Counted from the stretch's first letter, positions 4,673 through 43,254 are shown. The stretch is 64,000 bases of DNA from Klebsormidium nitens (GCA_000708835.1 DF237341.1:1-64000); one strand, 5' to 3'. Translations and numbers: made by a program. Notes: generated by a model from the sequence alone, not told the origin.

Positions 4673-5684
4673 CCCTTGTCAAAAATGACGTCCCGGGAGA
4701 TGATGAACTTCCAGTCGCGATCCCGGGGCAACCTATATGCCTTCGAGTCCGGCTCGTACTCCACGAACACACATCGCTTGCTCACCGGAACCAGCTTACG
4801 CCTCCGCTGCTTGGGAACGTGGCAGAACGCTCGGGCCCCAAAAACCCTCATATGCCCGACATTCAACTTTTCACTGGAGAACGCTTCCTAGGGGGTCCTC
4901 CCATGGGCGCTCACGGGCGTCCGGGTCCGGTGTAGTTCGCCGTCACCACGGCTTCCGCCCACACTTCCTTGGGCAACACCGAGTCCTCGAGCATCGCCCG
5001 AGTCCTCTCTTCAAATTCCGGTTAAATCGCTCCGCCGACCCATTCTGCTCGCCGCTATAGGAGGCGGTGTTCTCGTGTTCCCTTTCCCCCAAGAACGTCT
5101 TCAAGGGCCCCGATCCGTCCTTCCCGACTTGAGCTTCCTCCCCAATTGCAACTCCAATCGATTGATTAGTGATCAGTGAACAGTGATCATCGATTGCTCT
5201 GTGACCTTGGCCACCTCGCTCTTCTGCTTCATGGGAACTACAACCGAGAGCTCGCTATATTCGTCCAAGAACGTGGCAAAGTACCGGCTCCCCCCCCCCA
5301 TACCGAGGTTACCGGCATGGCCCGCAGGCGTCCATGGGAAATAGCTCAAGAGGCTCCGTGCTCATGGAGTCGGATTCAGAGAGAAGGAGCCTAGTTTGCT
5401 TGCCCACAATGCAGGGTTCACACACCGAGGATTTGAGCGCCATAAACGCACTCGGTTCCATCCCGACCTTCCACAAGTTCGCCTTGCACCATTTCCGCCA
5501 AGTTTTCGTACCCGGCCTGTCCCAACCGTCGGTGCCACATTTCCGCCGTTTCCGGCTTTTTCATTAGGAAGCACGTGTCCTTTTCCGCCCGGTTGACCAC
5601 GTAGATTCCCTTCACTTTCCGAGCAACAAGGATTACCTCCCCGTCAACCTCAAGTTCGGAGTTGCCATTCTCCTTGATCAACAC
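4673..5684 (-). pseudogene. Copia GAG-pre-integrase plus integrase core and SH3-like C-terminus (disrupted)
   Basis: MWHRRLG, C..C zinc-binding remnant, MDACGPM, EQNGSAERFNR, HMRVFGARAFCHVPKQRRRKL, GYEPDSKAYR-like segment, ISRDVIFD. Confidence 0.9.
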
Positions 5685-5716
5685 TAACGCAATCTCGGTG
5701 GCCGTGCTCCCCGAGA

Positions 5717-5994
5717 TTACATCGTTGCCACCCCCGTGACATACATCACGTTCTGCCGAGTGACCAATCTATCTCCGCTCAGTGTCGCACACCGCAGGTC
5801 AATCGAGCCGGTCCCCTCTGCCAATAGGGTACCCTTTTCCCCAAACGTGAATTCTCGGCCACTCCCCCCGAACAATCCGAGGATCTCAAATAGGCTCTTG
5901 TCCACGGTTAGGTGTTGGAAATAGTACCCGAATCGGCGAGCCACTCGTCGGTACACACTCCCTCAATGACGCTAAAGGCCACACTCTTGGGAGG
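5717..5994 (-). pseudogene. Copia aspartic protease remnant
   Basis: EWLADSG followed, after a frameshift, by HLTVDKSLF...FGEKGTLLAEGTGSI...NVMYV. Confidence 0.8.
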
Positions 5995-5999
5995 TTTCC

Positions 6000-6365
6000 T
6001 GTTGAGATAAGGGCATTTAGAGACCGAATCTCTGGGTGATTCTAGGGTTTTAGGATCACGACGTCGACGTTAATTGGACGATAGCTCGTAGTTACAATTA
6101 CACGGTTGAATGCGCGAGGGCTTTAGGGCTGTAGCTTTACACCCGAATAACTTGGCGATAACCGTTGATATTCTGTAGCTTCGATGATAGCCGTCGAAGT
6201 ACGGTATAGAGTGAAAATTTATACTTACTAGGTGACACTTCATTGAGCCTACTAACTAGGCTGAAGTGTAGACCTAGACATATAGGCCGTGACTCGGAAC
6301 ACTCCATATACATTGTGTGAACTTGATTGATTCAAGATTACTTCCAACAACGCTGTGTTTCGACA
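6000..6365 (+). mobile_element. Solo LTR of a sister Copia family, antisense to its host
   Basis: TGTTGAGA...GTGTTTCGACA. Shares blocks with the reverse complement of both host LTRs (TGAGCCTACTA, ATTGTGTGAACTTGAT, CCAACAACGC.GTGTTTC, TACACCCGAAT). TSD is imperfect: TTTCC at 5995-5999 and 6369-6373. Confidence 0.85.
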
Positions 6366-12130: not shown

Positions 12131-15100
12131 ATGGAGCCGAAAGTATTGAGTGGTGGTGGTGGTGGCGGGGAGGGGGCTACTGCCCCCCCTCCCTTCATCA
12201 ACACTGACCTGACGAGCACCCGCCAGGAGTACTACTTCTCCCCGCCCGCCTGGATCGATGCGTGGCTGCTGCGCCAGCTCCGCGACCCGCGCGACACGCC
12301 CCTCGCGTACCTGCTGTTCAACATCATTGTGCTGGTGGTGCCAGCGGCGGTGGCCACCTTTGTGGCGCCCCCGTCCCACGCACTGGGCGCTGCGTACCTG
12401 GTGCTCAGCAACGGCCTGTTCCTGCAGCGCTTCCTGCTGGGGCTGCACTACGCAGAGCACCTGCAGGCAAGGTGCCGCCCCCGGCAGCAGGGCCGCCACA
12501 TAGTGTCAATGACAGCTCCTGGTTGCTGGCCATCAAGGATTGGCAGGGGCTACTGAGCTGAGATCTACAAGACCCGATCAGGTGCCTTCTCAATGGATGC
12601 TAGCAATAGGACTTTTGATTGACTGTGTGGCTGGAACCTTGGTGCTCTTGGCTTGACCAGCTATCCTTTCTTCTAACTGCAGATCTTCAAGAGCGGCCTG
12701 CCAGGGGCTGTCTTGAACTCCCTGTGCCCGTACTTCCTGTGTGCCCTCTTTGGCCTGCCGTGAGTGTGCCGCCCACCTTCCTGCCCAGGATGTCTGGCCC
12801 CTGCTACACCTCACATTCCCCCACTCTTGATCTGCTCCTTCCTGGCCTGCTTCACTCCCAGCTGAGCACCTGGCACAGCTCTCAGATGCGCTGCTCACTT
12901 GGAATCGCGCTGTCACATCTGGGCAGCCTCTTCCCCTGAGCCCCCACCTGTAGCCTGCATTGCTGGGCCTGCTTCTACATAACCCCCATGCCGCACTTTT
13001 GTACCAATGGTGCTGAATGGGCGCCGGGTCTCTCTGTGCCAGGCCTGGCATGTACCGCCTGCATCACATCTACATGCACCACTGCGTAAGCCCCTGCCCT
13101 TTTCTCCTCCACTGCCGCTCCATATGTTGCCCAATTGGTGGGGCATCCATGGTCCAACGTGCCTGCCTGTTCTTCCCCCCAGCTCCATTGCTTCCAGACG
13201 GCTCCTTTCGTGTCCTTTCCCTCATTGTCTGCTGACTACTGGTGCCTGTGCCGTTGCGCATGCAGGAGAACAACTTGTTCCCCCACGACCTGTCCAGCAC
13301 GGAGGTCTATCAGCGCGACAACTTCTTCCACTGGCTCCTGTAAGCTCTCGCCCCCACACTAGCCTACCCGGGGCGCTTGTCTGTCCCTTGCGCTTGTCTG
13401 TCCCTTGCGTTCCTTGCCCCATGCTTCCCCGCCTTTGGGGAGTGTTGTGCCCCCCTTCCCCTCAGCGGCTGCTGTGCTGCTGCTGCGTGCCAGGTACTGG
13501 CTGCGCTTCTGGGTGGCCATCTGGGTGGAGCTGCCCCTGTACGCCCTGCGCAAGCGCCGGCTGCGCCTCGCCGCCCACACCCTCGTCATGCTCGCCGCCT
13601 TTGCGTGAGCCTGCCGGCCATGCTCCTCCTCTCCTTTTCTGTTGTGTTACTTCGTTGTATCTGTGGTCTTATTCCAACAACCAACCCAACTGAGAATCTT
13701 GTTGGAAACAGCTCCCTCCAATTCCATTTGGACGTCTTAATCGCTTTCGAGACTCACCAGGACTTGCGGCCCAGACTCCTTTCCGTTCCAGGCAGCTTGC
13801 TTTTCGTGCCCCTCCACTCCCGGTATACTTCTCCACTGCTGCCCTATTCCCGGCCCAGCCCCTGCCCGCCCGTCTCCTCCACTGTCCTCTTGGCCTGCGT
13901 GCAGGGCCGTCGTCCGCCAGCTGTGGCTCTTCAACCACGTCGCCACCATCTGGGTACGCGGCCCCCTTTCGCTCTTCCTTCCTGCCCGAGTGCGCCCCAT
14001 GCTTGCCCCGCACCTCTCCTGCATGCTCGCTGCCCTCTCTCCCGGGGCATCCCCTGGTGGGTGTGCGCTGCTGCGTGGGCCCACTTGGTGCGTGGCCCTG
14101 TGCTGCAGGTGGTGGCTGCCCCCATGCTGGTGGCGTCGCTGGCCATGATGTTCGGCAACTGGGCGCAGCACCTCTTCCTCGACCCCGCCCGCCCCCGCAG
14201 CAACTACGCCCTCACGTCAGCGCGCTCCTCCCCCCCTCGCTCTCGGCCCACCTCTGCTGCGACCTTCCGCCAAACGGCGCTGCCTGTGTTCGTGCCCCAT
14301 GAAAGGCGTGGAGGTGCCGCCTGATGCACACACCTGCTTCGGGCTTCTGCGCGAGGCGCCTCTCTGTCTCGAGCTCTGTTGCGCATGCGCCCGTGAGCCT
14401 GGCTCGTGTATGACGCCGCTCTCTCGCTGGCGCAGCTACAACCTGGTGAACGCGGCGGACAACCTGAAGACGTTCAACGACGGCTACCACATCGTGCACC
14501 ACCAAAACTCCAAGCTCCACTGGTACGCCCCCCCCCCCTTCCGCCCTGGCTCTAGCACCATGGCGGCCCTGCTGCTGCCCGGATGCCTTGCGGTGTGGTT
14601 GTGGTGCTGTCAATTTCCGGTCGTGGCGAGTGTGGCCCAGCAGCGGCTGTGTCACCTTTGCTCTGCGCGTCTCCTCGCAGGACGGAGCTGCCGCTGCGCT
14701 TCATGCAAACACTGGACAAGCACGCGCACGAGGACGCGCTCGTCTTTGAGGTACGCCGCCCATGCTTCACCCAGCCCGGCCCGGCGCCAGGAGGAGCCGC
14801 TCGCCATGCTCGCACTCATGTCGCTGTGGGAGGACTCTGGTGCGGCTTGGGTCCCCCGTTGCTTGCCGTGCTGCCTCGTTGCATCCGGCTGATCTGTCGC
14901 CCGTCGTGCTGCGCTGCAGGGGCTCGGCTTCTTCGACGTCGGCTTCCTGGCCATGACGGGGCAGCTCCACAAGCTGGCGGACAGGTATCACCCCGCCACC
15001 TCGCTCGCCCGGCCCTCCGCAGCCAGCCGAGCGTCGTGAGCATTGTGGAAGCCGCCATGGCAGCTTCTGAGACGAGGCATCGTGTTGCAGGCCGCGCTTG

Positions 15101-18464: not shown

Positions 18465-18640
18465 CTCAAGAAAGATAATAGTAAGCCAAAATAATAGTAA
18501 GCTCCGACTAACACTAAAAACCCTAACCTTAAATGAAACACCCGCTCCGGACCCGTACCCACCCTAACCACCATACTAACCCTACCCGTCACAGTGCGGT
18601 TACCTTACTATTATCTGGGCTTACTATTATTCTTCTTGAG
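18465..18640. mobile_element. MITE-like element, 176 bp, 37-bp TIRs
   Basis: 18465-18501 vs reverse complement of 18604-18640: 33/37 identical. Each arm carries ATAATAGTAAG twice. Flanks share only TT. Confidence 0.75.
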
Positions 18641-18818: not shown

Positions 18819-21684
18819 ATGCCGGGCAGCATTCATCTGGCAGGTAGGGTACATCTTCTCAGTCTGGCATTGTGCAGACGCTCTGCAGGCAGATTAGTTG
18901 TGGAGAATAGCGATTGACTTTATGCATCCAGCCATCATATTGGGTTTTGCGATGCACCAATGTGAACGGTCTTGATTTGGCCTCCCTGTGCATCTATCCC
19001 GCTCTTACATTCCCTTTCCCTTTGCAGTCCTGGACGCTTCTGACATATCGCAAGGTGAGTAGGGGCAGAAAGGAGAGAGGTTTTGATGTCTTTGGCTGGG
19101 CGCATGGTGGTGCTCAACTGACCGGGCTACTTCTTCAGTAGAAGCTTTTGTTCTTCAAATTGAACAAATGCAGAATTGCATATTGGCTGCTGGAGGCGTC
19201 GTTGGAATGGAGCCCAATTGTTGAGGAAATACTGTTCCTTGCAGTTGCTGGAGATGGTGTCTCCATCAAAGGTGAGACCTTTGCTTGCCGGTGTCTGCTC
19301 CCTTCTATTCTCCTATTTACAGCTGTGCAACTCTGATGCTACTTTAAACACTGCTTCCAAGAATCAGCAAGGTGGCACTGATTCGCTTTTACGTACATTA
19401 TGCCCACATGTTGCATCAGTTGAGAGCATTTGCTTGCCTACTGTATACTTACGATGAAAGGTTGACTTCCTGATCACCGCAGCAACGCTGGGCAAGAAGC
19501 AGTTTGTGACAGAAGTGGCACGCATCACAGCGGGCAAGGCTGGACCCTGGGACGATGAGGAGCATGCATTCTCGGTGATGTCACTCACTGTAAGGCACCA
19601 GGCTTATGCCCCAAACTGCTCGAGTCATGACTCCCTCTACTCATTGTCTTTGTCCCCTTCAATGCCCCTTGTTCCTGATTCTCAACTCACGAGCTTCTGT
19701 GCAGTCTGTAGACGTTGTTTTTGCCTCTCTTACTCAGTTTCTTCCTTGTTCCAGGACCCCCTTGTCCTTTCACTTCTGGACGCCAATGGCGAGCCTCTAG
19801 GCAGTACCCGTAAGTTTGCTTTAGTCAGCTAGGCTTGCGTGCAAGCAAGAAAAGCCAGCAGACACTCTGAAACTTCTCCACGTTTGGCCTTTCGTCTCAT
19901 GCAACATCTTGTGCCAGACCTGCCCTTCGATTGTAGCTCCTCTTTTCTGAACTGTGGCTTTTATTGTAATGTTGGGAGATCTCGGTGAAGTCACGAACAA
20001 CTTCATACTGACTAGTCTACTGCCTCGTGTAAATGTTCGCAAGTCCTTGTGGAATTGCACACCACCATGACTGAGGTAGGATCATCTGTTATGTATATAT
20101 CCGCGGTGATTGGACCTGTCAGACTGCTGCCGAAAACTGGTTTGACTTTAAAGCAGCAGGATCTATGCCATGGCAACCTTTGCTTGGGTCACCGTCAGTC
20201 ACTGGTTTGGATTTGGTCCACTCATATCTTCAGCTCTTTTCTGTTTGCAGAGGTTACGACTCCATCCATTGTGGAAAAGTGAGTTGCTCTGGCCTTTCCT
20301 CGTCTGCCCTGATGGCTGCTCACTATCCAATGGCCCCGTTCCTTTCTTCCTGGTCCTCGTGCGCTCTGCAGAGAGGTGATGTGGCAGGTGTGGGGCAGTG
20401 GTGCACCCCAGGCTGCCTGCGCTCTATCATGGGCTAGACATGGGCCTGAAATCCTGCTCCGCTGAATGCAGAGGTTTCCGGGACGAGACTCTTGCGCTGA
20501 AAGATGGCAAGGTAGGCTTGGGGGTGTCTGCACTGCCAGCTGCATGGCATCGTCATGCACTCCACTCTCAGACACAGGTCTGGGGCAATGCACGAAAGAT
20601 GCACGTGGGTGAGTTCATCAGGTTTGCATTGCTGATGCTGTTGGTGATGACTACACCCCCCTTGTGAGAATATGATACGTCACTTACGCAATTGCTTTGA
20701 GGAGTTGTTGATTCATCACTTGTCGGCCCCGCCTGTTGCGCAGGGCCAGATCCAGGGCCGCGTGCATGTGAAGCTCTCGTTTGTCCTGAGCGACGAGGAG
20801 CGCAAGAAGATTGAGGCCATGGTGAGCTGCCGCTCACCGCGGCGTCCACCTGCGTGGGGGCCGCACTGGCCAGGCTGGCGCGCAGTGTCAGTGGCAGCCG
20901 CCTGGCCTTGGCCTCCCTAGCGCTGGATGTTGCGAGTGCTAGTCCTCTGTTGCTTGTGATGTGGCTGTCACCATCTGTAGGCACGTCGCCAGCGTGTTGC
21001 TCTCTTAGAGAGCGACCATGTGTAGACTCGTATGAACAAGGACCCTGTATTGTGGATCCAAATAACCTGTGTCCAGCGGTGCCATGAGGTCTGTGCTGCA
21101 GGTGGCCACCCTGCAAGTCCCGCCCCTCATTGCATCCCTGCTTTGCTCCCTGCAGCGCTCCAAGTCGCTTGCAAGGAAAGGGGGGGCAGCAGAAAAGTCC
21201 CCCACTGCTGATGCGGAGGTTGTTGCCAGCCCGGGCCTGAACGGTCGGCGGGCAAGTGCGTCACGCTTCTCCTTTGAGAAGGCGATTGGCAATGGCGAGA
21301 GCACGGGGCCGGCGGAGACAGCGGCGGTGGTGGCGGCGGTGGGCGCAGAGGTGGACGCCCAGGTGGCGCGCGCCAGCACGGCCGCGCTACAAGCCACTGC
21401 CGACGTGGCGAAGCAGGCCAAGGAGGTGGCGGCCACCAGCGAGGGGGCCACCGCAAGCAGTGCAGACAAGCTGGCCCACAAGGCGGCTGAGGTTTCAGAG
21501 AAGGCAGCAGGGGTGGCAGCCACTGCAGCGGAAGGGGCGGCAGGCAAGGGAAGCGCAGGCAACGGGGTGGCAAAAACGAAGGCGGGAGAGGCGGATATGC
21601 TGCTGCGGCGGCCTAGCGTGAAGGAGCGCGTGGCAGCGCTGGAGAGCCCGGTCGGGCCACCGTCGCGTGAGGGGAGCCTGAAGA
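18819..21684 (+). CDS. N-terminal part of a protein with a C2-like domain resembling an uncharacterised land-plant family, followed by an Ala/Glu-rich linker (runs into gap)
   Basis: Eight short exons splice in frame to MPGSIHLAVLDASDISQVAGDGVSIKATLGKKQF...HAFSVMSLTDPLVLSLLDANGEPLGSTQVTTPSIVEKGFRDETLALKDGK...VHVKLSFVLSDEERKKIEAMRSK. This is close, from memory, to plant proteins starting MPGTIQVSVL with LQFVLSEEER. Confidence 0.8.
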
Positions 21685-22234
21685 NNNNNNNNNNNNNNNN
21701 NNNNNNNNNNNNNNNNNNNNNNNNNNNNNNNNNNNNNNNNNNNNNNNNNNNNNNNNNNNNNNNNNNNNNNNNNNNNNNNNNNNNNNNNNNNNNNNNNNNN
21801 NNNNNNNNNNNNNNNNNNNNNNNNNNNNNNNNNNNNNNNNNNNNNNNNNNNNNNNNNNNNNNNNNNNNNNNNNNNNNNNNNNNNNNNNNNNNNNNNNNNN
21901 NNNNNNNNNNNNNNNNNNNNNNNNNNNNNNNNNNNNNNNNNNNNNNNNNNNNNNNNNNNNNNNNNNNNNNNNNNNNNNNNNNNNNNNNNNNNNNNNNNNN
22001 NNNNNNNNNNNNNNNNNNNNNNNNNNNNNNNNNNNNNNNNNNNNNNNNNNNNNNNNNNNNNNNNNNNNNNNNNNNNNNNNNNNNNNNNNNNNNNNNNNNN
22101 NNNNNNNNNNNNNNNNNNNNNNNNNNNNNNNNNNNNNNNNNNNNNNNNNNNNNNNNNNNNNNNNNNNNNNNNNNNNNNNNNNNNNNNNNNNNNNNNNNNN
22201 NNNNNNNNNNNNNNNNNNNNNNNNNNNNNNNNNN
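21685..22234. other. Assembly gap (550 N)
   Basis: Run of N inside coding sequence. Confidence 1.
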
Positions 22235-24132
22235 GCGCTGCGGCGGGAGGAGGCGCGGCAGCGGGAGGCGGACGCACACAGGGTGGGCAAGGAGGCGGAG
22301 GAGGCGCGGCGGTACGAGGCGGAGTACCGGGAGCAGCGGCAGCGGGTGGAGGAGTACAAGCGCAAGGAGGAGGAGAAGAAGAAGGAACAGGTGCGGGGGG
22401 CGAAAGGAGGGCCAAGCCGCTGGGCACGGTCCGGGCTTTGAAGATGACTGTGAAGCTTGATGTGTGGCTTGTGCAGGCTTGCTTTGAAGATCTTCAGTGG
22501 TCGACATTCCCCCGTTGATCCAGAGGTTCGTGTATAACCTGGTCAATTGCCATGCCATGGACATTCGAAGGAACTGGCTCCTGAGCTCTTGGCTTTACGG
22601 CAGTCAGCAGTTATTAGGTAGCATCTTTGTATTGCACCTGTAGATATCTCCTGACAGGCTTTCGAGATTGGGCAGATCTGGTAACAGTGATGCAGATATA
22701 ACACACCCCCACCCAATTGGGGACACAGATGCTATGAGATTATACTGATCATCGACTTTACTGGCAAGCGAATTGGAGATGAGATTGAAGGCCTTCGTCA
22801 AAATCGAAAACGGCGCTTTTCATTAGGATCCTCATAGGACTTGGTCCAGGACTGAAAGCAGTGGCAGGGTCTCCCTATCATCACGGGCAGTTGGGAGCAG
22901 CTGTCTGGTTTGAATACGATTTGGCGGTGCTTCCAGAAGAGCTTGGCTGAAGCTGGCTTCTTTTCAAAGGTGGCCGTCATCTTGGCCATCTCAGTGGAGG
23001 GCAAAGTGCCGAATTATCTTGCCACAAAAGATCGCATCTCGCCAGACAGGCCCTCACATCACCGGTTGCTAGGCTGGCCGCTCCGAGCCCTTTCGCGTGT
23101 GCATGCTTGTGCTGGCCGCGGCCCTCACGCATGCGTGCTTGCTGCCTGCAGGAGCGCCAGCGGGCGGCCAAAGCCGCGGCGGCCACGCGCAAGGCGGAGG
23201 AGGCGCGGCAGGAGGAGCAGCGACGCGCTGAAGCGGCAGAGCACGGGGACGACGACTCCGACGAGGGCGCCCCCAGGAATATGTGGCACCAGGTCGGCAT
23301 CCCCTCTCGCACGGCCCTCTCGCGGCAGCTGTGGAGCCGCTCACCCGCGAAGTCTCACTGCAATTCCTTCTTCTCTTCCAGTCCCGTGTCGCTTGGGCCT
23401 GCTAGTGGTGCGAGGTGCTGTGCGTCCTGTGCTGAATGCCTGGCCGCCCGGGCCGGCCCTGCTGATGCGCTTCTCACTGCTGCTCGCCCCCCGCAGGTTG
23501 CCGGCACTGTGGCGTTTGCGGTCGCCCTCTTCTTCCTGTGGCCAAAAGACTCGCGAAAACGGGTCGCCTCCCGCAGGTATGTGGCCCCCCACCCAAGGCT
23601 CGCCCTGCCGCCGCTGCCGCTGGGCCCCTGCCGCTCGGTGTGAGCGTCTCAGGCCCCTGCTGCCCGCCACGTCAGTCCCGCGTGCTGACCCTCCTGTCGG
23701 CGGTGCTGTGCTCCTGCAGGCGCGTCAAGGTCAGCGGCGGCCGGTACATCGTCCAGAAGGGCGACTCGCTGGAGACCATAGTCGGCCGCATGTGCTACAA
23801 CCCAGAATCCGACTTTTACAAGATGAACCCAGGGGTAGGTCATGCCAGCTACTCCTACCTGGGACCGTGCATCGGCAGTCTCGAATACCTTGCTTGAAGT
23901 ATGCAGGTGAATCCTTTGAGGTGCTCTTTCGGTCCAAATCTGTCCTTAGACCGTACGAATTGATTGGCTAAGCTTCGCAAGAAGTATACTGGGAGTGGGC
24001 TGCCAAATCTGAGAGCTGGCGTCTTCTGTGGCCCTCGATAGTGACGTGTCGGAAACCCGTTTCCACCTGCAGGTCTGTGATCGAAACACAATCTACCCAG
24101 GCCAAGTGCTTCGAGTACCAGAGTATCAGTAG
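22235..24132 (+). CDS. C-terminal part: coiled coil, transmembrane helix, LysM domain (probably the same gene as 18819-21684)
   Basis: Five in-frame exons: ALRREEARQREA...KRKEEEKKKEQ | ERQRAAK...MWHQ | VAGTVAFAVALFFLWPKDSRKR | ...YIVQKGDSLETIVGRMCYNPESDFYKMNPG | VCDRNTIYPGQVLRVPEYQ* (stop 24130-24132). YxVxxGDSL...NP...IYPGQxLxVP is the LysM consensus. Confidence 0.85.
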
Positions 24133-42400: not shown

Positions 42401-43254
42401 AAGCATGGTGCCCTAGCCCTGAGCTTCCTCAAGCTAACAAGCGAATGGACATCAGCGGAGACACACGTGCGCAATGCTGCCGAATCATTTTGCCTCCATC
42501 TCAACCCCTTATCATCACACCATTCCTGTGTCCATCGATCCGAATAAGCCTGTCCTCAGCTGCCCCGTGCTTTCCGTGCCCAGAATTTAAGCGGTGGAGG
42601 GACTTCGTACGACCAATGTTTGCAACCACCACCACCTACCTGAGCTTTCCAGTGAAGAATTGAGGCTTCTAGCCTGCTCCGGAACTCTTCCACAGTCGAT
42701 GGTAAGAGGTCTGCCTCAACGATCATGCCGTCATAGCGATCCTCGATGGCTCCAAGTACTTGGAACCCATGGGTTTCGCTGGTCGAAGCAACCGGGCTGG
42801 CGTCCATAGCACTGATCCTTCTTACTACCGAACGCTCGCTGCCTGCTTCGTCAGCTCGTTTGTCTACAGCCAGATATGTCTCATGCAGATCCTTGAATAC
42901 ACGACGGGAGAGGCTATTGGGCTTGGGCACTATCAAAAGATGATTTGCACATCGCATGCGTTCTGGCCCTGAAGCTGAAGCTGGTGGTGATCGTCCCAGT
43001 AATAGCGTGGTTGGCTGATGGGCCCAGCATTCTTTGCTCCCACCCTGAATGGAAAGATCAACACAAGATCGTTGCTGAAAGCGGAACTTGAAGGACGTCC
43101 TACTCCAGATTCGAGCCATCTGCCTGGAACCAACGCAATGCAGGCTGCAGCCACTAGGTAGATTGGTGGTCCACTTGTGTGCAGCACTAATTGGTGACGA
43201 GCAGCGCCCGAGTGTGAACGTGGCCGGTGTCCCACTGTCACTCAATGCAGCCAT
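39443..43254 (-). CDS. Plant-type Nudix hydrolase (NUDT2/6/8-like subfamily) with long organellar presequence, 8 exons
   Basis: DRYDG, GKKGIWLKLP, GFGYHHA..GY.MLT.WLP..PSTLPANASHQVGVGA, GIWKLPTG; Nudix box G-LANHG-E-DICAAAV-REVKEETGI; GKSDLFFVC. Last exon 39596-39443. Confidence 0.93.

Follow-up and report, generated by a model that had tools for sequence, protein, structure and literature searches.

A single gene joining a C2 domain to a LysM tail

We analyzed a 64,000-nucleotide (nt) stretch of nuclear DNA from the streptophyte alga Klebsormidium nitens (GCA_000708835.1 DF237341.1:1-64000; hereafter the window) and, within it, the plus-strand locus at positions 18819–24132. Reading and splicing of the sequence define a single gene of 13 exons, with GT–AG at all junctions. 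The spliced product is identical, residue for residue, to the 472-amino acid (aa) database protein P0001 (‘LysM domain containing protein [Klebsormidium nitens]’); the exact match requires the GT..AG ‘intron’ that the annotators placed at 21651–22249, which spans an assembly gap. The predicted protein has an N-terminal C2 domain, a long linker, a charged helix, a transmembrane (TM) helix and a C-terminal LysM domain. On the comparative evidence set out below, the gene is the ancestral full form of a streptophyte-wide family of C-terminally anchored C2 proteins.

Residues 1–128 derive from eight short exons (18819–20821). A large exon starts at 21156, enters the run of N at 21685–22234 and restarts at 22235; four later exons supply the remainder of the charged helix, the TM helix and, in two pieces (23720–23834 and 24073–24132), the LysM domain. 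The stop codon is the TAG at 24130–24132. Features are listed below with the evidence for each; L001 (20.6 kb) and L003 (13.4 kb) are gap-free contigs carrying orthologous genes.

18819–18843, + strand: exon 1, with the start codon, MPGSIHLA and the first C2 strand (splicing yields P0001; M-P-G is invariant in 51 relatives)
19028–19054, + strand: exon 2, C2 domain (AG/GT junctions; within the exact P0001 match)
19245–19271, + strand: exon 3, C2 domain (splice junctions; P0001 match)
19483–19589, + strand: exon 4, C2 domain, ATLGKKQFVTEV...HAFSVMSLT (junctions and P0001 match; kept in L001 and L003)
19755–19809, + strand: exon 5, C2 domain, DPLVLSLLDANGEPLGST (junctions, P0001 match, related contigs)
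20251–20278, + strand: exon 6, C2 domain, in the frame QVTTPSIVEK (L003 differs at third codon positions only; IVEKG is family-conserved)
20472–20511, + strand: exon 7, C2 domain, GFRDETLALKDGK, with the acceptor at 20472, not 20474 (L003 comparison; P0001 match)
20744–20821, + strand: exon 8, last C2 strand RVHVKLSFVLS and helix start DEERKKIEAM (AlphaFold (AF2) model: strand 106–118, helix 120–134)
21156–21684, + strand: exon 9 before the gap, an Ala/Ser/Glu-rich linker, probably disordered (27% Ala; 100% identity to P0001)
21606–21647, + strand: short linear motif RRPSVKERVAALES within the linker (recurs as far as the angiosperms)
21685–22234, no strand: assembly gap of 550 N within exon 9 (read-through in P0002 and P0003; spacing of the flanks in L001)
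22235–22390, + strand: exon 9 after the gap, start of the charged E/R/K helix (96% identity to L001, where it lies in the same reading frame as the pre-gap part)
23152–23292, + strand: exon 10, remainder of the charged helix followed by a pre-membrane acidic patch, HGDDDSDEG (junctions, related contigs, P0001 match)
23497–23576, + strand: exon 11, TM helix VAGTVAFAVALFFLWP (23497–23544) and basic flank KDSRKRVASR (hydropathy, flank charges, conserved pattern)
23720–23834, + strand: exon 12, which completes the basic flank and opens the LysM domain at 23745 (Pfam LysM at residues 424–469; L003 codon comparison)
24073–24132, + strand: exon 13, second part of LysM (to 24120), EYQ and stop (L003 codon comparison)

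An alternative structure with a 32-nt exon at 20044–20075 and the following exon read as RLRLHPLWK was rejected, and the annotated model is right at this point: the L003 counterpart of exon 6 differs from the window solely at third codon positions of (Q/E)VTTPSIVEK and IVEKG is found family-wide, which identifies QVTTPSIVEK as the correct frame.

One reading frame across the assembly gap

Two proteins bear on what lies within the run of N: P0002, from a Logan assembly (about 85% identical), and P0003, from a JGI metagenome (56% identical). Both are uninterrupted open reading frames (ORFs) in which ...REGSLK is followed by about 39 codons, then by ...EEARQREADAH and the charged helix. In L001 the sequences that flank the gap are 116 nt apart, which together with one leftover pre-gap nucleotide keeps the frame. 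Because P0002 and P0003 read through and the L001 spacing is in frame, the two flanks belong to one exon; the gap probably hides about 39 codons and has a true length of about 116 nt rather than 550 nt. The artificial intron of the public gene model deletes 34 nt of real coding sequence before the gap and 15 nt after it, in addition to the ∼39 hidden codons; by this reconstruction P0001 falls about 50 residues short of the real protein.

L001 and L003 each carry the C2 exons, linker, helix, TM segment and LysM in order on one contig, although the first three very short exons have no detectable match in L003. With all parts in order and one ORF across the gap, the single-gene model is sound, as a first-pass annotation of this DNA had proposed with a caveat concerning the gap. 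That the model instead fuses two genes – a C2 gene ending in or before the gap and a separate TM–LysM gene after it – is scarcely conceivable. The gap itself invites the idea, as do the short stand-alone TM–LysM proteins (PPASP) of land plants (PMC4815162), but it is contradicted by the two gap-free orthologous contigs, by gene models with the same C2...TM–LysM layout in Chlorokybus, Mesostigma, Closterium, Riccia, Selaginella and Diphasiastrum, and by the identical layout of two further members on transcript-like contigs.

The N-terminal domain is a C2 domain

No match to Pfam C2 (PF00168) was obtained with the Klebsormidium protein itself. Its orthologues do match (Chlorokybus 72.2 bits, Psilotum 25.4 and P0005 23.9, against a cut-off of 22), and a profile of 51 family N-domains matches solved C2 domains at E = 5e-7. 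The AF2 model of the N-domain (pLDDT 88.6) contains 9 strands, and the top 50 Foldseek matches are almost all C2 domains (E down to 2e-8; best TM-scores 0.7–0.78), the best being otoferlin C2A, dysferlin C2A, plant E-Syt1 C2A and Munc13 C2B. Despite the silence of Pfam, the agreement of orthologues, family profile and predicted fold settles the assignment: as modelled, this is a genuine C2 beta-sandwich starting at residue 1. Met1 already belongs to the fold, and M-P-G does not vary; these two features rule out a signal peptide or a transit peptide. The first-pass annotation had described a C2-like domain, no signal peptide and no kinase; it was right on each count, a Pfam search of the protein having found no kinase domain.

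Profile alignment against a Ca2+-binding C2 domain shows that the family consensus lacks the DPY and DxD positions and most of the canonical aspartates; in the family alignment, the Klebsormidium loops hold other acidic residues there. Judged from the missing aspartates, the domain may well bind lipid or protein independently of Ca2+.

Linker, motif and charged helix

The linker is of low complexity and roughly 200 residues long. Embedded in it is a motif of the type SVKxxIxAFE: RRPSVKERVAALES in Klebsormidium, TPSSVKAKIKAF in ferns, VKAKIKAFETS in Ginkgo and TPSNVRKMISAFES in angiosperms. The Klebsormidium motif matches no Pfam family and is probably a docking site for a partner.

The stretch beyond the gap had been taken for a coiled coil, a view that its sequence does not favour: the exonic parts of 22235–23292 are 49% E/R/K with 8% large hydrophobics and show no heptad pattern. 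In composition these roughly 90 residues look more like an ER/K single alpha-helix, that is, a putative stiff spacer.

The TM helix and LysM tail

Residues 385–404 of 472 form the sole strong hydropathy peak and correspond to the TM helix VAGTVAFAVALFFLWP. The flanking charges are -5 upstream and +8 downstream (basic flank KDSRKRVASRRRVK), so that both the helix and the basic flank noted at first pass are confirmed, and 68 residues follow the helix. Across relatives the helix is conserved (KQV..GGA...AG...WP) with a Gly/Ala face; such conservation suggests that it may do more than anchor the protein.

The tail matches Pfam LysM (PF01476) over profile positions 1–43 of 43, with 23.6 bits for the whole protein and 29.2 for the tail alone (cut-off 20.9). 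Its AF2 model has the order strand–helix–helix–strand at pLDDT 89–95 over most of the domain, and the best Foldseek matches are LysM/CBM50 domains (probability up to 0.96; E at least 0.07 owing to the small size of the domain), OsCEBiP among them. The canonical LysM of the first-pass annotation is thereby upheld. The GDxL and GQxL motifs are retained, and by sequence the domain is a predicted binder of N-acetylglucosamine (GlcNAc) polymers. Between the window and L003 the 19 codons of exon 13 show 6 synonymous and 0 non-synonymous differences, and exon 12 shows 16 synonymous versus 12 non-synonymous codon differences; at the codon level, the comparison shows purifying selection on the last LysM exon.

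Cysteine codons lie at 23770–23772 and 24076–24078 in the LysM domain. A matching Cys pair occurs in Chlorokybus, in Closterium-like members and in P0035; the Riccia domain has two Cys, the first at a different position, and the Mesostigma and Selaginella domains have none. The pair may form a disulfide, which would indicate an oxidising compartment.

A streptophyte family with an ancestral LysM tail

An exhaustive HMMER search with residues 1–135 as query (E ≤ 1e-3) found 136 representative proteins of 300–1300 aa, with the C2 domain almost always at residue 1; a word search with the N-domain recovered only the Klebsormidium protein itself. Every named relative is a streptophyte. The tree of C2 domains follows the species order (Chlorokybus and Mesostigma, Klebsormidium, desmids, bryophytes, lycophytes, ferns, gymnosperms, angiosperms) and, because it reproduces the species phylogeny, we regard the relatives as orthologues. 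About a quarter of the listed proteins have no C-terminal TM helix, and many are short or truncated models. The tails of the others fall into three classes:

TM and intact LysM: Mesostigma, Chlorokybus, Klebsormidium, Closterium, Riccia (two species), Selaginella, Diphasiastrum and two members on transcript-like contigs
LysM-derived but decayed tail: Chara, the second Diphasiastrum copy, Ginkgo and Cryptomeria
TM and short basic tail: the ferns Psilotum, Pteridium and Adiantum, one Ceratodon gene pair and all TM-retaining angiosperm members

Ten of 144 family tails match Pfam LysM at E ≤ 0.01. In terms of larger groups, the intact tail is found in the early-branching lineages, in desmids, in liverworts and in lycophytes. 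Two LysM-bearing members are encoded on contigs barely longer than the ORF, which suggests that they are single intron-free transcripts. In mosses, the Physcomitrium and Ceratodon loci contain the TM exon with no LysM exon within ∼10 kb downstream (tblastn with eight LysM tails), a result that leaves room for distant exons or other paralogues. LysM is also absent from the fern orthologues and from Erythranthe (Mimulus) guttata. The first-pass annotation had stated that land-plant relatives end at a C-terminal TM helix without LysM, and in ferns, angiosperms and mosses they do. From the pattern of intact, decayed and absent tails across lineages it follows that the LysM tail is ancestral and has been lost or has decayed at least three or four times.

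In Ceratodon purpureus (P0024 and P0125; locus L005) the copies lie on the V and U sex chromosomes, as judged by the tags KC19_VG026200 and M758_UG068700, with a third family copy on chromosome 7.

The RefSeq and UniProt labels of named members, where looked up, are only generic (‘uncharacterized protein’, ‘C2 domain-containing protein’, ‘LysM domain-containing protein’), and literature searches found no paper describing a C2–TM–LysM protein or family. An annotation exists for the gene itself, but the family, the architecture of its ancestral form and the pattern of LysM loss appear undescribed.

LysM and plastid peptidoglycan

Mosses are the best-documented peptidoglycan-positive land plants. 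Among the named lineages with an intact LysM, all those checked – Klebsormidium, Closterium and Selaginella – are peptidoglycan-positive: plastid peptidoglycan has been labelled in K. nitens (Takano 2018, cited in PMC9434261), chloroplast division in Closterium is sensitive to peptidoglycan antibiotics (PMC3398972), and Selaginella has a complete peptidoglycan gene set including PBP (Table S5 of PMC4815162). The converse does not hold. Plastid peptidoglycan or its genes are reported to be retained in mosses, ferns, the Ginkgo and Cryptomeria lineages and Erythranthe (PMC9434261; PMC12681378; Table S5 of PMC4815162), the record for ferns being that of PMC9434261, that for gymnosperms the retention of the genes, and that for Erythranthe guttata the presence of MurA–G (Table S5 of PMC4815162). 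In all of these lineages LysM is absent or decayed.

The suggestion at first pass that LysM was lost in plants without peptidoglycan therefore fails as stated. The accompanying expectation that LysM presence tracks retention of Mur and PBP genes holds in one direction only: the LysM-bearers checked are all peptidoglycan-positive, but several peptidoglycan-keeping lineages have no LysM. The refuting outcome named at first pass, a LysM distribution uncorrelated with plastid peptidoglycan, is thus partly realised. Since LysM has been lost in lineages that keep peptidoglycan, binding of peptidoglycan is not essential to the family.

Surroundings of the gene

Degenerate CCCTAA(A/C)C units, resembling telomere repeats or telo-boxes, form a run some 220–300 nt upstream of the start codon (about 18520–18600) that may be a promoter element. 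Elsewhere in the window, a minus-strand ORF at 42559–43254 gives a sub-threshold match to Nudix hydrolase (24.6 bits, cut-off 26.5); none of the other large ORFs tested matched Pfam, and no transfer RNA genes were found in the window. On L001, the neighbours of the related Klebsormidium gene include an ORF with a faint VTT domain and a PfkB kinase ORF (5480–6001 and 13841–14260).

Topology of the protein

With no N-terminal signal and a single TM helix near the C-terminus, the protein has the two features that mark tail-anchored proteins. From the sequence we infer with good confidence that the N-terminal 390+ residues are cytosolic and the tail lies across the membrane: 388+ N-terminal residues without a signal cannot be translocated, and LysM would for that reason be non-cytosolic, a placement supported by the recurrent Cys pair. 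The opposite arrangement, in which the tail is retained in the cytosol by the basic flank, the hydrophobic stretch serves as a hairpin, monotopic anchor or protein interface, and LysM binds a cytosolic GlcNAc-bearing ligand, is very unlikely. It would obey the positive-inside rule on the Klebsormidium flanks and recall signal-anchored outer-envelope proteins, whose post-TM basic region faces the cytosol (PMC4010795). However, a hairpin would need more than 16–20 hydrophobic residues, conservation of the basic flank does not extend through the family, and the recurrent Cys pair argues for an oxidising compartment.

Which membrane is crossed is less certain. Outer-membrane tail-anchored proteins have a moderately hydrophobic helix with a basic flank after it (PMC4010795), and for those of the plant outer mitochondrial membrane a dibasic motif has been experimentally defined on tails of 3–8 residues, several of the proteins that carry it also reaching chloroplasts (PMC4154396). 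Among our relatives (P0031–P0137), 45 have tails of 10 residues or fewer and qualify by tail length as tail-anchored; 32 of these 45 end in an RQRKxR-like sequence that fits the dibasic motif. The moderately hydrophobic helix and strongly basic flank, together with these 32 tails, point with modest confidence to an organelle outer membrane.

The same tails raise the possibility that the anchor is, family-wide, one for the mitochondrial outer membrane or for several organelles, with the intermembrane-space LysM a protein- or glycolipid-binding module or a relic rather than a binder of peptidoglycan. We consider this rather improbable, despite the 32 dibasic ends (PMC4154396) and the moderately hydrophobic helix with its basic tail (PMC4010795). 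The motif was defined on tails far shorter than 68 residues, and is shared by proteins that also reach chloroplasts. Strong purifying selection acts on the LysM domain, which is retained from Mesostigma to the lycophytes; moreover, no GlcNAc polymer is known in mitochondria.

A putative tether between outer envelope and plastid wall

The reading that we tentatively prefer, and which falls somewhat short of being probable, is that the protein is a C-terminally anchored organelle-outer-membrane tether whose LysM domain binds plastid peptidoglycan. In it the anchor would reside in the outer membrane of an organelle, which in Klebsormidium would be the plastid outer envelope; only the 68-residue tail would cross the membrane, as in tail-anchored proteins, with the large N-terminal part remaining cytosolic. 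LysM would grip the GlcNAc backbone of the peptidoglycan layer just under the outer envelope, while the spacer would push the C2 domain and linear motif into the cytosol, where either a second membrane or a partner protein would be held. The effect would be to fasten the outer envelope to the wall and to connect the plastid surface with the cytosol. In mosses, ferns and seed plants LysM was dropped and the rest retained, from which the core job would be that of the cytosolic part and anchor, with LysM an accessory grip. With LysM only 5–25 residues from the bilayer, whatever it binds must be close up against the membrane, as a wall layer or a precursor linked to lipid would be. That the membrane is specifically the plastid outer envelope, and the ligand the peptidoglycan layer, is speculative.

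Several observations weigh against the tether. LysM domains bind chitin and other GlcNAc glycans as well as peptidoglycan. Only Klebsormidium and Mesostigma have the strongly basic flank, that of Chlorokybus and Riccia being short and nearly neutral; in the angiosperm members the dibasic motif favours mitochondria over plastids; and a review of the chloroplast outer-membrane proteome mentions no C2 domain protein. To these must be added the loss or decay of LysM in mosses, ferns, gymnosperms and Erythranthe, which keep peptidoglycan. Finally, the 68-residue tail exceeds the classical limit for tail-anchored proteins (roughly 30–40 residues or fewer), which makes the protein ‘tail-anchor-like’ and co-translational insertion into the endoplasmic reticulum (ER) possible.

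Insertion by that route leads to a different view: the protein would be an anchor of the secretory pathway, its N-terminus cytosolic and its LysM in the ER lumen or at the cell exterior, binding microbial chitin, peptidoglycan fragments or GlcNAc glycans. On the cytosolic side the C2 domain and motif would relay a signal or tether ER to plasma membrane; this is the ‘kinase-less glycan sensor’ of the first-pass annotation. We judge it somewhat unlikely. Sixty-eight residues after the TM helix permit insertion dependent on the signal recognition particle; the flank on the N-side is no less basic than that on the C-side in Chlorokybus, Selaginella and Riccia, a distribution in keeping with an N-in orientation in the ER; and the possible disulfide would suit the ER lumen or apoplast. 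A C2 domain, an anchor and a long spacer are also the layout of an ER–plasma membrane tether (plant E-Syt C2A is among the top structural matches), and the rise of multi-LysM receptor kinases could have made this LysM superfluous, the first LysM receptor-like kinase (LysM-RLK) of streptophytes having been reported from Chara (PMC6362431). On the other hand, the Klebsormidium charges of -5 before and +8 after the helix oppose the positive-inside rule in the ER, a single LysM so close to the bilayer is badly placed for wall-side ligands, and the short basic tails of seed plants resemble organelle outer-membrane signals.

Relation to known proteins

The closest parallel to the tail is PPASP (van Baren et al. 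2016, PMC4815162). This short protein has its TM helix at the N-terminus and its LysM at the C-terminus, and among embryophytes its distribution coincides exactly with retention of the peptidoglycan pathway. Those authors proposed, on bioinformatic grounds only, a location in the plastid outer membrane and contact with peptidoglycan or lipid intermediates (PMC4815162); the literature that we searched contains no functional follow-up. Compared by its published description, the PPASP module looks like the tail of the C2 family: a single TM helix directly followed by one C-terminal LysM, no transit peptide, restriction to streptophytes and a host with peptidoglycan. PPASP differs in being short, with its TM helix N-terminal, and in lacking the C2 domain, linker and charged helix; the Klebsormidium protein has about 390 residues before the TM helix as annotated, and about 430 with the gap filled. 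Furthermore, the presence of PPASP in embryophytes, mosses and many angiosperms included, follows that of the peptidoglycan gene set (PMC4815162), whereas the presence of LysM in the C2 family does not. Should PPASP and the tail prove homologous, the LysM function may have passed to a separate gene in land plants, and the losses would then be compatible with a role in peptidoglycan binding. A profile word search with the TM–LysM tail returned only generic short LysM proteins, mostly bacterial by name, and a metagenome scan with a narrower tail alignment gave no match.

C2 tethers such as the extended synaptotagmins (E-Syts; plant SYT1) and ferlins likewise combine C2 domains with a single anchor and a spacer, and the ferlins are also C-terminally anchored. 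The Klebsormidium protein differs in having one C2 domain and no SMP or FerA/DysF domain; its C-terminal anchor is unlike that of E-Syt and SYT1, and its family consensus is without most of the usual Ca2+-binding aspartates. We know of no other C2 tether of this kind with a glycan-binding domain beyond the membrane. The plant LysM receptors (LysM-RLKs such as CERK1; LYP/LYM/CEBiP) contain LysM domains of the same Pfam family, but those receptors combine a signal peptide with an N-terminal ectodomain of three tandem LysMs and with either a kinase or a glycosylphosphatidylinositol anchor, in contrast to the single LysM that here follows the TM helix at the C-terminus, with neither signal peptide nor kinase.

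Two further comparisons are analogies only; the searches made revealed no sequence relationship. PDV1 and PDV2 have a cytosolic helical N-terminal part, one outer-envelope TM helix and a short C-terminus in the intermembrane space, much as we envisage for the Klebsormidium protein; the PDV tails bind ARC6/PARC6, not a glycan. In bacteria Lpp, OmpA and Pal tie the outer membrane to peptidoglycan, the role proposed here, using other folds.

Implications

A bolder version of the tether is that early streptophytes invented a host protein that staples the outer envelope to the retained cyanobacterial wall by way of a LysM domain in the intermembrane space, that its C2 domain and motif link the wall to cytosolic membranes or machinery, and that PPASP is the split-off tail of this gene. 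Taken as a whole this is unlikely; were it true, the bacterial outer-membrane-to-peptidoglycan tethers would have in this protein their counterpart among eukaryotes, and the fission that gave rise to PPASP would explain why LysM could be dropped from the C2 protein in mosses, ferns and seed plants.

Plastid peptidoglycan is well supported in streptophyte algae, bryophytes, lycophytes and ferns. To our knowledge, almost nothing is known of host proteins that contact it from the side of the outer envelope. The family described here provides a concrete candidate, with a predicted lipid-binding head in the cytosol, a spacer, an anchor and a predicted glycan-binding tail, and the lineages in which that tail is intact, decayed or absent offer a natural series of tests. 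Even if the peptidoglycan idea fails, there remains an uncharacterised protein family that extends from Mesostigma to the angiosperms and shares a C2 domain at residue 1, a linear motif and a TM helix.

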